This document shows positions 8,698-22,993 of a stretch of DNA of 32,000 bases, in pieces. Source of the DNA: Zygophlyctis sp. KS116. Lineage: Eukaryota; Fungi; Chytridiomycota. The stretch lies in NCBI GenBank assembly GCA_054661495.1, contig BAAFSQ010000004.1:30001-62000 (forward strand), given 5' to 3'. The notes below the pieces were generated by a model. It worked only from the letters and a program-made list of their open reading frames with translations, had not been told where the DNA came from and did no database searches. Each line of letters begins with the position of its first letter. Position 1 is the first letter of the stretch. Position numbers and translations under genes: made by a program.

Positions 8698-9930
8698 TTA
8701 AACTTCATTATTCACTGAAATTGGTGTAGAGACAACCTTTTCATGAAACTTTCGTAAGAGAGTATCTACTTCTTCAATTCCAAGAGGTTTAATATCAGCT
8801 AGTTCTTTGATTTGAGCTGTAACAGATTTAACTTGATCATCAGTTAATGATAATCCTAATTGTTGAACTCTGTTCTTTACAGCATTCCAGCCAGTTAGTC
8901 GATGTCCTATAGAGACATATCTGGTCATTCCAAAGTCTTCTGGCTTTAATATTTCATAAGTAGAAGGATTATTCAAAATGGCTTTAGCATGAATACCAGC
9001 TTTATGAGTAAAAGCACAATAACCGGTAATGTAGTTATTAAATGGGATCTGAACTTGAACTGATTCTGCGACTAAATTTTCCAAATCCCGTAGTTGAGAG
9101 AGATTATATTTGTCCATGACTCCTTCTTTATCAGCAGTATACATTCTTGCTAATAGACCTCCAAGAGGGGTTATACCATTTCTTTCTCCGATTCCTAAAA
9201 CTGAAGTATCAATATGTGTTGCTCCTGCTTCTAATGCAGCAAAAGCATTAGCAATAGCACATCCAGTATCATTATGAAAATGACATTCAATATCACAACT
9301 AACAGTGCTTCTTAAAATTTTGACCAAATCATAAACTTGTCTTGGATCTGCACAACCAACAGTATCAGCAATACCGACACGATTAACTCCCAACTTATCA
9401 ACGGTTTTATAAAGTCTTAATAAATCTTGAATATCAGATCTAAAAGAATCTTCAGAAGAGAATCTGACTTCAAGACCTTTTGATTTAATAAAGGTTATGA
9501 CTTCAGTTGCTTGTTTAATGATATAATCCATATCCTTTCCATGAGAAAACTGCCTCAATAAAGATGAAGTTCCAATAACAACATCAAGACCATCGACACC
9601 AGTTTCTACTGCTAATTTAGCATCATCCATATGACAACGAACATGAGTAAGAATCTAAACGTTTAAACAAAATCACAGTACCTTTGCCTTTAATCCTAAT
9701 TTTGTGATTGCCTCAACATCTAATCTGGATTGCTCTGACGCTGCTGGAGAAGTTAATTCTATATAATCAACTCCAAATTCATCTAAAGCCTTTGCAATCG
9801 CAATCTTGGTTTCAGTATCAAAAAATGCATTTGCAAACTGTTCGCCTTCTCTTAGAGTAGATTCAATGATTTTAAATCCCTTGACTGCCTTTCTCTTCTT
9901 TTCGATATGATCAGATTCAACTGTTGCCAT
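8698..9930 (-). CDS. LYS20: Homocitrate synthase (401 aa). Intron 9655-9681
   Basis: [82 protein letters not shown] and [14 protein letters not shown] are fungal Lys20/Lys21-type motifs. Confidence 0.97.
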
Positions 9931-10289
9931 TTCCCCAATTTTTGTAAAGCTGTGGCGTTTGACGATGAAACTGACAAATTTTTAAGTGTTTCATTCTGAT
10001 TAATGTCTAATTGTACTTGCAACAACATTCCATTTATTGCCAGGAATCATGTTTGGTTATTTTTTTGCAAACAGCAATTTCGAAAATGACCGTTGATAGA
10101 TGTGTCCGATTTTATAAAAAATCATGTTTTAGAGTCGAAACGTACATTCTTGGAAACGTTGGTAGCAAGGGGTTTTCATGACTTTGCATCACATTATTTT
10201 GCAAGCATTAATAGTTAACAAATAAAGTCTCTTTAAGCAGAAATTCAAAGATTTGAAATCAAATTTTTTAGGTTTTGCAAGAAAAAAAA

Positions 10290-13200
10290 ATGGCAGAGTT
10301 GATTCAATTATTAAGTGCTCTCCAATCAATTAACAATGAGACTCGATCATCTGCTGAAAAAGCATTGGAATCCCTTTGTACTCCTGAAAATGCGCCAAAT
10401 CTATTGATCAATCTTTCCTTGTTTTGTTCGCCTACATCTGATACAAATGAATTGCGATCTTTTGCTGCGATTTTAATTAAACGACTGGGACTTATGACGA
10501 TAAAAGATTCTGAGCTGTCATTATTAAGTACACTATCTATAGATCAAATCATGGCAGTGAAAAATAATCTAACCAGTGCAGTCATGCAGGATAGCATATC
10601 TTCCTCAAGACAGAAAATAGGTTATGCAATTGCAGAGCTATTCAAATACTTTAATTCAGTTAATGTTCCTTGGGATGTCTCTGATTGCTTAAGGGCTATG
10701 ATTACACATCAAGATTCCGGATTAAGAGAAACTGCATTTCTAATTATTAATGCTGCTCCGATTATCTTGGAAGAAATGACTGGTCATCAGGTGGAAGGAA
10801 TTGGAAAATGTCTTTTTAGTGGACTTAAGGATGAGTCTTTGGATGTTCGAATATCGGCATTGGAGGCAACAGCATCATTATTAATTAATACTGAAACTAA
10901 TACTACAAGAGAAGGATTAAAGTCTATTGTTTCTGAAATGATGGCAGTACTTCCAGTAGTATTAAATGCAGGCAATAGAGAAGATGCATTTGTTGATTGT
11001 CTATCAGTGTTGATAGAAGTTGCTGAATCTTATCCAAAGTTGTTTAGATCTGTTTTAGATCAAGCTCTGCCATTTATGTTGGAAATAATGAAAAATAATG
11101 AAATGGATGATTCCGTTAAGCAGAGTTGTTTGGAATTTTTAATGACGATTATGGAGCAAGTACCAGGTATGATGAAAAAGCAGCAGCATTTTGTTCCAAC
11201 AATTCTTCCGATTCTTTTAAATTGGATGGAAGATGTTGAAGACGATCCGAGTTGGTATACGACAGATGATGTATTAAAATATTTATGTAATTCAAAGGTT
11301 GATGATCAAGATAATGACTTGAATCCTATTGTGGCTGAACAGGCTCTAGATAGGATTGCTCTGGCAATGAAAGGAACTGTCGTACTTCCAATCGCTTTTT
11401 CTATTATTCCTGGAATGCTCTCTTCTGCCGAATGGCAAAAAAGACATGCTGCACTTAAAGCAATTTCAGCTATTGGTGAAGGATGTTTCAAAATAATGAA
11501 GATGGAATTAGAAAAAATTCTCAGGTAATTATTAATGATTCTTAAAATCAAGTGTTGTTATTCCTCACCTTGCTGATCCTCATCCTCGCGTGCGACACGC
11601 TGCATGCAATGCTATTGGTCAAATGTGTACAGATTTTAGTCCCACTATAGAACAAAAATTCCACAATATTATAGTTCCCGCACTTGTAGGTGTTATGGAT
11701 GATGTCCAGTTTCCTAGGTAATGCTCTAATTTAATTAATATATTAGAGTTCAGGCATACGGAGCTGCTGCGATTGTAAATTTTTCGGAAAATGCAAAAAA
11801 GCATCATATTTCTCCATATTTAGATATGATATTTCAGCGTCTTTTGATTTTGCTAAATACTGGAAAACGATATGTGCAGGAACAGGCTATTACGTCAATT
11901 GCCACTGTTGCAGACTCTGCTGGCGATCATTTTGTCAAGTACTATTCTTCCATTATGCCATTATTGATGAATATCCTTCGTCAGGCGACCCAAAAGGAAT
12001 TTCGTTTGCTAAGGGGAAAGACATTGGAATGTGCCACCTTAATTGCATTAGCTGTAGGAAAGGCCGTTTTTTCTCCAGACGCACCTCAATTCATCGAAAT
12101 TATGAAGTCAATTCAGGCTTCCGTCAGTGATAATGATGATCCACAATCATCGTATTTGTTATCTGCCTGGGCAAGAATTTGTAAAGTCTTGGGCCATGAC
12201 TTTGCTCCATTTTTGGATCAAGTTCTGCCTCCACTTTTTGCATCAGCAGAAATAAAGCCAGACTTTGCTGTTTTCGAGGGTAACACACTTTATGAATTTT
12301 AATTCTTAGAAGACGATCAAATAGACACTGATAAGTATAACGAGGATGAAGGATGGGAATTTGTTAGTGTTGAGGGACAAAGAGTAGGCATTAAGACTAG
12401 TATTCTAGAAGATAAATGCACTGCAGTTGAAATGTTGATTTGTTATGCGCAAGAAATGGGTGCAGATTTCCATCCCTATGTTCAAAAGGTTTTAGGAATC
12501 GTTGTTCCTCTTTTGAAATTTTATTTTCATGACGGAGTTCGGTTTGCTTCTGCATCAGTGATACCTTTTCTATTCAAATCTTGGGTGGATGCAAAAGTTC
12601 GTAAGAATATTTAAAGGCTCACATTTAGCAAGGGAAACTATATTGGCCACTTGGCAAGATGTTTGTGACAAAATGTTAAACGTGATTATTGCGGAACCTG
12701 ATGTTACATTTATAGCACACTTGCTAGAGTCTGTTCATGAAGTATATTTCCATTTAAAATAACTTAACTAGACTATATCTAATTTGGGGAAATACTGCAT
12801 GACAAATGAGTTAACGCAGAAATGTATTTCTGCTCTGCAAAACCAAGTCAATGAATACATGTCAAGATCTAACGAGCGTGAAGGTATGGAATTTTTTTTG
12901 TCGGTGATGATTTTCAGATTGGATTCAGAGCTTTACTTAAACATGCGTCTTTCACCAGACCGGTTTCTTTTTTTAAAGATCTGTAAATGCTATGACCTAA
13001 CTTAACACTTGATCTGAGACATTTTCATCATTAAATGCTAACTTTGTAGGAAAAAGGAAAAATTCAGAATATGAACCGGAAGATGATCAAGGAGATGAAG
13101 AGGAAGACGCAGATGAAGAGCTGATGAGCCAGGTAAGAATATTGATTGTATAAAAAACAAGTTATCTAGAATCATCCATGAACTCTTGAAGTCTCAAGAT

Positions 13201-21521: not shown

Positions 21522-21591
21522 TTTTGACGCCACACGACGCCGCTCAATTGTCATACTCTGACATAATCTTGCATCATCAAAATCTTATTTT

Positions 21592-22993
21592 TCATAAAAT
21601 CTCATCAGTCATTTTGATTCCAAGAGACTCCAATTCCTTAATAATGGGATATACCAATTCCGGAGTCATGGGTGCTAATACACCACGTTCTTTAATTACT
21701 CCCTCTAAAATTAATCTAGTAGCTATTCCAGCAGGAACTCCAACAGTAGTTGCCATAGCACTAGGTCCAAAAGGTTCTCCAAACCAAAGTCCAGTACAAG
21801 ATTGGTTTTGAATAGATCCATCTTTTAACTGAATTTTAAATTTATGTTGCAACATAACCATATCACGCTCTCCAGGACCGTACATCATTTTTTCTTCGAG
21901 TAGACAGCATAAAGTATCTAACAAATTTCCTTTACAATTGACTATATTATTTGAAAACAGTCCCAACCATTTTAATCCATGGATAATTTGATCAGATTCA
22001 TCAGTATTTTTTAAAAGAGAGCTTTTAACAAGTATAGACTCTACAAGAGTTCTAAAAATTAAAATATTAAAGAGAAATTACTCTTCATCACAAGTTTTAG
22101 TCTGTAAAATCAATTTCATCAATTCTATCCAAGTAATACTAGTACCTTGAGTTACAAATGCACATGGCTCATCATTAAGAAATCCTAGAGATCCTAAAAC
22201 TTTTACAAATCCAGGAAAAACTGCATATCTTAGAGTTCCTCTTATTAAAGTTTTACATTCCGGAATAGAATATCTTTCAGTATAAGGAGTAGAATCTCTA
22301 TTTGGATATCCAACAAACGCAAAAGCAGGATAAATCTGTAGAGGTTTTACTGCGCTCATAAGATTATCACCACTAATTTCAACTACAGAACCATCCTTTA
22401 GAAATTTAGCTGAATTTTTAAGAGCTAATAAGACTCCTCTTGAGGACCAACTAAATTTATAACCAAGTGGATTATTGGAAGCCTCTGGAGATGGTAATCC
22501 ACCGCAATAAGAAGTAAATTCTAAAATTTTCCCACCTGTAGAATGAACTTTATCAATAGTTTTAATTGCATACAAGTGATCTATCCCTGGATCAACCCCA
22601 ATTTCATTAAAAACCGTAATTCCAGCATTTTTCGCTCTAAAAAACATTAATAAATATCATTTACTCTTGATGCAATTCCTGCATTGCTGGAGAAACATAT
22701 GATGTAGTAACCACATGTTTTTTATTTTGTATTGCAGCCTTGATCACTTTTACATGATGTGTATAAGGAATTAAAGAAATCACCAAATCATGTTTAGCGA
22801 TTGCATCCGACAATTGTTTTTCATCGCCCACATCCAAACTTGTATAGCTTGCATTATTAAACTTTTTGGCCAATTCCGATGCTGCTTCCGTTCGTCTGGC
22901 TGCGACTGTGATTTGATACTCTGGAAACTTTGCCAAATACGCTAAACAAGGTCCAGCAACGAATCCTGATCCCAATAACAGAATTTTTGTCAT
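21592..22993 (-). CDS. LYS9: Saccharopine dehydrogenase (NADP+, L-glutamate-forming) / saccharopine reductase (447 aa). Introns 22052-22081, 22637-22664
   Basis: KILLLGSGFVA, VISLIPY, HVVTTSYVSPAM, NEIGVDPGIDHLYA, SYCGGLPSPEASNNPLGYKFSWSSRG, YPNRDS, RGTLRY, ERDMVMLQHKF and SAMATTVGVP. Confidence 0.96.

Follow-up and report, generated by a model that had tools for sequence, protein, structure and literature searches.

The primary-metabolism gene clusters described in fungi include GAL, DAL, nitrate assimilation and biotin, and the lysine genes LYS20, LYS12 and LYS9 are unlinked in S. cerevisiae. In Thermus and archaea, the alpha-aminoadipate (AAA) pathway to lysine runs through LysW, has no saccharopine steps and is encoded in a true operon. 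We analyzed a 32,000-nucleotide stretch of DNA from the chytrid Zygophlyctis sp. KS116 (the window; positions 30,001 to 62,000 of contig BAAFSQ010000004.1) in which three lysine genes lie within 14.3 kb: homocitrate synthase (HCS, LYS20/21; 8698..9930), homoisocitrate dehydrogenase (LYS12; 14970..16077) and saccharopine reductase (LYS9; 21592..22993), all on the minus strand. The fungal AAA pathway comprises Lys20/21, Aco2, Lys4, Lys12, an Aro8-type aminotransferase, Lys2/Lys5, Lys9 and Lys1 (PMC3556520). General accounts of metabolic gene clusters in fungi have been given (PMC7539958, PMC4256263), the latter a survey whose main text does not mention lysine. Mesosynteny, in which gene content is kept while order is shuffled, has been described for filamentous Ascomycota (PMC3219968, as cited in PMC7539958) and is presented as a peculiarity of the Pezizomycotina (PMC7539958).

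The lysine genes are three of eight consecutive genes, in the order HCS, IPO5, PPIE, LYS12, gene X, TOP2, COX6A, LYS9. As in the fungal pathway generally, the enzymes are canonical and have intact frames, with LYS4, LYS2, LYS1, the aconitases and an Aro8-like candidate elsewhere in the genome; the difference is that three of the genes are physically close. The known fungal clusters likewise bring non-homologous enzymes of one pathway together on a chromosome, but here no two lysine genes adjoin, essential housekeeping genes separate them, the steps they encode are three non-consecutive ones, and they are conserved together no better than background. The block also lacks most of the pathway and contains no regulator or transporter gene, and its status as a metabolic gene cluster is not established. 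The Thermus and archaeal operon resembles the locus in that homocitrate synthase is encoded near other lysine genes, whereas the genes described here have introns, fungal ancestry and, presumably, separate promoters. The arrangement is real and apparently undescribed, and we class it as conserved microsynteny in which three pathway genes happen to be included. A first-pass annotation, made from the letters of this DNA alone, knew of no description of it; our literature search likewise found no account of LYS20/LYS12/LYS9 linkage or of chytrid-monoblepharid synteny, which is weak evidence since subscription journals were mostly uncovered.

We attribute the proximity of the three genes, with a probability of about 0.6, to inherited microsynteny plus one block junction. 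Three ordinary, vertically inherited AAA enzymes would then be together mainly through chromosome history. LYS20 and LYS12 belong to an old chytrid segment with RIT1, NMD3, COG4 and ATG16 and, in the Rhizophydiales, also with IPO5, PPIE, gene X, TOP2 and COX6A, a segment that local inversions have shuffled (such inversions are seen for PPIE and for the HCS-LYS12 block relative to ABCA genes). LYS9 would belong to another unit, ANK-FRA10AC1-LYS9, whose neighbor in the organism's own clade is COX6A-TOP2; the COX6A/LYS9 junction would have been made in the ancestor of that clade or retained only there.

Linkage of LYS20 and LYS12 among chytrids

Hyaloraphidium curvatum (Monoblepharidomycetes) carries HCS and LYS12 on a single 444-kb contig, separated by 20 genes (about 39 kb) and in the order and strand found in the window. 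RIT1, a marker of the old linkage block located at 3373..4476 on the plus strand of the window, stands directly beside HCS in Hyaloraphidium, and COG4, NMD3 and ATG16 lie beside LYS12 there. All four are single-copy genes that are also present on C4, the 102,199-base contig of the 12.73-Mb assembly from which the window (C4:30001-62000) was taken; C-numbers below denote contigs of this assembly. The presence on C4, which makes up 0.8% of the genome, of four of the 22 non-lysine Hyaloraphidium genes has a binomial P of about 3e-5. As in mesosynteny, a gene set stays on one segment while its order and orientation change between Hyaloraphidium and the Rhizophydiales; unlike the described cases, this one concerns chytrids, one segment only and two 21-kb loci (the Hyaloraphidium stretches read, L041 and L077). 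The non-lysine genes share the deep linkage; the segment is old as a whole, with the lysine genes two of its members, and this suggests that ancestral chytrid linkage groups are reconstructable. COG4, NMD3, an ARF-family gene, RIT1 and ATG16 are found at 2.3-9.6, 33.4 and 83.5 kb of C4 and, in shuffled order, at 142-204 kb of Hyaloraphidium JAIVFI010000043.1.

Alternatively, the chytrid ancestor may have possessed a loose lysine neighborhood of LYS20, LYS12 and perhaps LYS9, kept in one chromatin domain by weak selection for co-regulation, which survives best in the compact genome studied here and decayed elsewhere. We consider this unlikely. Such a neighborhood would account for the shared order and strand of LYS20 and LYS12 in Monoblepharidomycetes and Rhizophydiales when the intervening genes are wholly different, for a triple that is improbable by chance, and for the run COX6A-TOP2-X-LYS12 common to the window and Entophlyctis helioformis. 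However, the non-lysine genes of the segment were kept equally long, the pair is split in Spizellomycetales, Chytriomyces, Polychytrium, Cladochytrium and Terramycetaceae and is 413 genes apart (by accession numbers) in Benjaminiella, and LYS9 stands near LYS12 in no locus read outside the organism's own clade.

Among the relatives, HCS and LYS12 are linked in Gorgonomyces, in the order LYS12-PPIE-IPO5-acyltransferase-HCS, and the same order plus HIS5 is found in an environmental Gorgonomyces-like chytrid (L042, with L089). In E. helioformis, HCS and LYS12 are five accession numbers apart, within the order COX6A-TOP2-X-LYS12-RFX-PPIE-IPO5. The Homolaphlyctis LYS12 model is fused to an RRM, which suggests that PPIE, an RRM-cyclophilin gene, is adjacent to LYS12 there, and in B. 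salamandrivorans, where LYS12 was not located, HCS is near IPO5. HCS-IPO5 is present in every Rhizophydiales locus read at HCS, making IPO5 the most persistent HCS neighbor in that order. Gene X adjoins LYS12 in L015 (an environmental contig from another run, HCS 95% identical), in L088 (a contig from the organism's own clade, LYS9 87% identical), in E. helioformis and in Boothiomyces, and TOP2 is at the same place in the first three of these. PPIE is inverted in the organism's clade, where it is tail-to-tail with LYS12, and in tandem in Gorgonomyces, L042 and E. helioformis; the HCS-LYS12 block is inverted locally relative to the ABCA genes. Where the pair is unlinked, HCS retains IPO5 only (Globomyces) or LYS12 retains gene X only (Boothiomyces). 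The pair is also unlinked in Terramyces and, judging from scaffold lengths and accessions, occupies separate scaffolds in Spizellomyces, Gaertneriomyces, Fimicolochytrium, Powellomyces, Phlyctochytrium arcticum, Geranomyces michiganensis, Chytriomyces cf. hyalinus, Polychytrium and Cladochytrium replicatum.

Across these loci, HCS-IPO5, LYS12-PPIE or LYS12-gene X, and LYS9-FRA10AC1 outlast the lysine-lysine links. The first-pass annotation had offered either ancestral linkage or selected co-localization as the cause of the grouping. Ancestral linkage is supported for LYS20-LYS12. A dedicated selected cluster is weakly supported: the housekeeping links outlast the lysine links, and the expectation that lysine linkage would be better conserved than that of the intervening genes was largely not borne out.

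In L042 (16956-17678), a HIS5-like aminotransferase gene stands head-to-head with HCS, so that two different amino-acid pathways have a common upstream gap. It was considered as an aminoadipate aminotransferase, and thereby a fourth lysine gene, and dropped, as it reads as HIS5/HisC; we take its motifs to be those of HIS5/HisC. In several Chytriomyces genomes, LYS12 has a tandem partial duplicate with a consecutive accession number.

The junction with LYS9 and the odds of the grouping

LYS9 adjoins the block in L088, which reads ANK-FRA10AC1-LYS9-COX6A-TOP2-X-LYS12-PPIE-IPO5. In L095, a more distant chytrid-like contig (LYS9 76% identity), ANK-FRA10AC1-LYS9 is retained and the final 180 bases of the contig lack COX6A, too short a stretch to decide. 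The LYS9-FRA10AC1 pair is common to the window, L088 and L095, with FRA10AC1 the persistent LYS9 neighbor. The 10 kb upstream of LYS12 contain no LYS9 in E. helioformis, Boothiomyces, Hyaloraphidium or L042, and neither do about 31 kb around the LYS20-LYS12 pair in L042/L089; in E. helioformis, two other gene models precede COX6A. Among the loci read, LYS9 near LYS12, and hence the three-gene grouping, is confined to the organism's own clade.

The odds of such a grouping were estimated under a null of random placement with 5,500-6,500 genes and 7-8 pathway genes. A pathway pair within four slots has a probability of 2-3%, and a triple is expected in 0.5-2% of genomes across 50-100 comparable pathways. 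The triple is unusual for a single genome, yet reachable when many genomes are scanned, and the null exaggerates the surprise where genes already share an ancestral segment with local shuffling. Co-orientation of the three lysine genes has a probability of 1/4 by chance alone and tells little, because five of the eight genes of the block are on the minus strand.

A recent rearrangement could instead have placed ANK-FRA10AC1-LYS9 by the LYS20-LYS12 block and been fixed for lysine co-regulation, so that the locus would be a cluster in the making. The junction has indeed persisted, being present in the L088 species as well, a third gene this close is expected by chance in less than 1% of cases, and a LEU2 pair, described below, provides a tight pathway grouping in the same genome. 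But any move of LYS9 took two unrelated genes along, and 4 kb of TOP2 still lies between LYS9 and LYS12; no compaction, regulator, transporter or shared motif accompanies the junction, four other pathway genes are scattered, and events at 0.5-2% per genome are expected when very many windows are surveyed. Recruitment of this kind is, in our judgment, distinctly unlikely.

Several observations weigh against inherited microsynteny as the whole explanation. In each of the four informative relatives, Hyaloraphidium among them, LYS12 and HCS share a strand, with LYS12 upstream. Three pathway genes in eight consecutive slots have P = 1.0-2.3e-4 per pathway, and a third gene at most four genes from an existing pair has a probability of 0.6-0.9%, both under the random-placement null. 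The genome seems to contain other pathway groupings, such as the LEU2 pair, which makes selection for proximity plausible there. The main gap in the argument is that the look-up of LYS9 near LYS12 in named genomes reached 10 kb only. Weak selection for lysine-gene proximity may operate, and the selected-cluster reading is weakly supported. That this is an undescribed loose chytrid lysine neighborhood, with LYS20-LYS12 linked since the Monoblepharidomycetes/Rhizophydiales split and LYS9 either ancestral or drawn in for co-regulation, is a tentative proposal that we think somewhat improbable. If true, it would represent a rare eukaryotic amino-acid pathway cluster, caught forming or decaying; if selection holds the genes, an early-diverging fungus would have a primary-metabolism cluster not described before, with which the formation of loose clusters among essential genes could be tested. 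On the likelier reading, the locus is a caution that inherited synteny alone can co-locate pathway genes, and its lasting value is a segment with gene content common to Monoblepharidomycetes and Rhizophydiales.

Enzyme identity, assembly and ancestry

Spliced genes were compared with databases exon by exon, and exons were joined in a script to check frame and length. HCS encodes 401 aa in exons 9930-9682 and 9654-8698, separated by one 27-nt intron (9681-9655); LYS12 encodes 349 aa in exons 16077-15572, 15542-15306 and 15276-14970, with two 29-nt introns; and LYS9 encodes 447 aa in exons 22993-22665, 22636-22082 and 22051-21592, with introns of 28 and 30 nt. All introns of the three genes are GT-AG and 27-30 nt long, and the models contain no internal stops. 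With identities checked as follows, the three genes stand where the first-pass annotation had placed them, on the minus strand and as three of eight consecutive genes.

Among solved proteins, HCS is closest to 3ivs, a homocitrate synthase (536 bits), with an isopropylmalate synthase at 117.5 bits, and the protein matches TIGR02146. It shares 94-95% identity with several environmental proteins and 85-89% with its closest named homologs, which are Rhizophydiales HCS. The HCS tree groups it (support 98/91) with Gorgonomyces, Globomyces, Terramyces, Boothiomyces, Entophlyctis helioformis, Polyrhizophydium and Batrachochytrium; on this one gene, the organism most likely belongs to the Rhizophydiales. 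Geranomyces HCS proteins named “Saccharopine dehydrogenase”, and others named “Homoaconitase”, contain HCS domains only, and were set aside as naming artifacts rather than fusions. For LYS12, exon 1 has 3ty3, a homoisocitrate dehydrogenase (HICDH), as its best solved relative (182.8 bits), with IDH and IPMDH at no more than 75 bits. Identity to named HICDHs is 71-72% for the window gene and 24-50% for four more Iso_dh genes on other contigs, one of which is a clear LEU2. Assignment of the window dehydrogenase to Leu2 or Idh, which the first-pass annotation had named as fatal to its proposal, is ruled out by the 3ty3 score, the HICDH identities and the separate Iso_dh genes. The LYS12 protein opens with the catalytic domain itself, and a mitochondrial presequence is not obvious. 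LYS9 has 1e5l, a saccharopine reductase, as its best solved relative (255 bits) and is single-copy, the sole other match in the genome being an AASS-type enzyme on C9. That gene (C9:11569-14499) is a bifunctional LKR/SDH lysine-catabolic gene, present besides the biosynthetic LYS1 and LYS9.

A misassembly, a horizontally transferred operon-like unit or mis-identified enzymes would also produce an apparent cluster, and these are highly improbable. The assembly is fragmented (1,175 contigs), and public contigs on 17400-23300 are short, with none spanning it. The gene order is nevertheless repeated in independent assemblies: L015 reads HCS-IPO5-PPIE-LYS12-X-TOP2, and since L015 and L088 jointly cover every junction of the block, misassembly, a further ground on which the proposal might have fallen, is excluded. 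Horizontal transfer is disfavored because all three genes contain spliceosomal introns, top hits are fungal, and HCS nests in the Rhizophydiales; no bacterial LYS9-like protein found exceeds 56% identity, and the enzyme identities are clear. No gene-tree conflict or bacterial origin was seen in the top hits of LYS12 and LYS9 or in the grouping of HCS. Metagenome matches to LYS9 exon 2 were all distant, with identity no higher than 56%; most of these loci were GC-rich, and those examined were intronless. Judged from their sequences, the three lysine genes look vertically inherited. The window DNA itself is present in freshwater metagenomes.

Gene packing, the wider pathway and a leucine pair

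The housekeeping genes are tightly packed around the lysine genes. IPO5 (Importin-5; 10290..13926, plus strand) is head-to-head with HCS across a gap of about 360 nt, and PPIE (13985..14963, plus strand, start approximate) ends about 6 nt from LYS12. Gene X (16085..16497, minus strand) encodes an uncharacterized eukaryotic protein of about 129 aa and is followed by TOP2 (DNA topoisomerase II; 16811..21082, plus strand, boundaries approximate). COX6A (21150..21521, minus strand, lower boundary approximate) is similar to PF02046-labeled genes that occupy the corresponding place in L088 and E. helioformis, while FRA10AC1 (23049..23777, plus strand) is head-to-head with LYS9, with 55 nt between the start codons. 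The interleaved genes had been listed as importin-5, PPIE, an MDH1B-like gene, TOP2 and COX6A; four of these were upheld, but the “MDH1B-like” gene, our gene X, has no dehydrogenase domain and no Pfam match. It has weak glutaredoxin-like look-alikes, and we take it to resemble the N-terminus of MDH1B only.

Gaps within the block are 6-360 nt, and relatives are equally tight. Gene X and LYS12 share a strand, and 7 nt separate the stop of the former from the start of the latter (13 nt in L088 and 37 nt in L015); judging by this spacing, LYS12 transcription must either begin within gene X or read through from it. Tiny gaps and head-to-head pairs would leave few harmless breakpoints and so tie each gene to its immediate housekeeping neighbor. 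With tight packing and harmful breakpoints, housekeeping neighbors would be kept while the longer lysine-lysine links break, which matches the pattern in the relatives. Given this packing, promoters would overlap neighboring genes or be bidirectional, and the lysine genes probably have separate promoters shared with housekeeping neighbors rather than forming a co-regulated unit. Motif searches of the upstream gaps revealed no shared element. A Gcn4-type site (TGACTC) was absent from the three lysine-gene upstream gaps, a weak test, and comparison of the HCS-IPO5 gap with relatives showed no clear conserved block. The single RNA run yielded four short contigs. A candidate GCGCC-like element, which we take to resemble an E2F-type site, lies just upstream of HCS (9930-9960, and in L015 too) and of LYS9 (22993-23020).

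Two tandem cytochrome P450 genes, presumably fatty-acid omega-hydroxylase-like by motif, lie between RIT1 and HCS (window 4712-7868), and in none of the relatives read is this pair beside HCS. The ABCA transporter gene at window 1-2345 and that at 25.5-28.9 kb of C4 are recent tandem duplicates whose C-terminal exons match near-identically.

The remainder of the pathway was mapped to other contigs. LYS4, LYS2 and LYS1, which the first-pass annotation had reported missing from the window along with the aminotransferase, are on C80, C20 and C254, respectively, and the aconitases are on C23 and C334. The best aminotransferase candidate, which we take to be Aro8-like by its motifs, is on C7. No match to LYS4, LYS2, LYS1, the aconitases or any scored aminotransferase was found on C4. 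An Sfp-type Lys5 was not found in the assembly, which is incomplete, so absence is not implied. At about 50.7 kb of C20 (L029:4700-4790), LYS2 is head-to-head with a neighbor a few tens of bases away, presumably an AAR2-like housekeeping gene.

On C203 (9341-12691; L034:4341-7691), LEU2 is head-to-head with a fused LeuCD/HacAB-like gene of the aconitase family, with 33 nt between the starts. The LeuCD/HacAB-like gene is of the archaeal/bacterial type 2, and a canonical LEU1 was not detected in the genome. Judged from sequence, LEU2 and its partner may form a leucine cluster of two genes in which the isopropylmalate isomerase is non-orthologous. As a cluster candidate, this pair is stronger than the lysine genes: a real cluster in this genome consists of directly adjacent genes, as in the LEU2 pair, and the lysine genes are unlike that.

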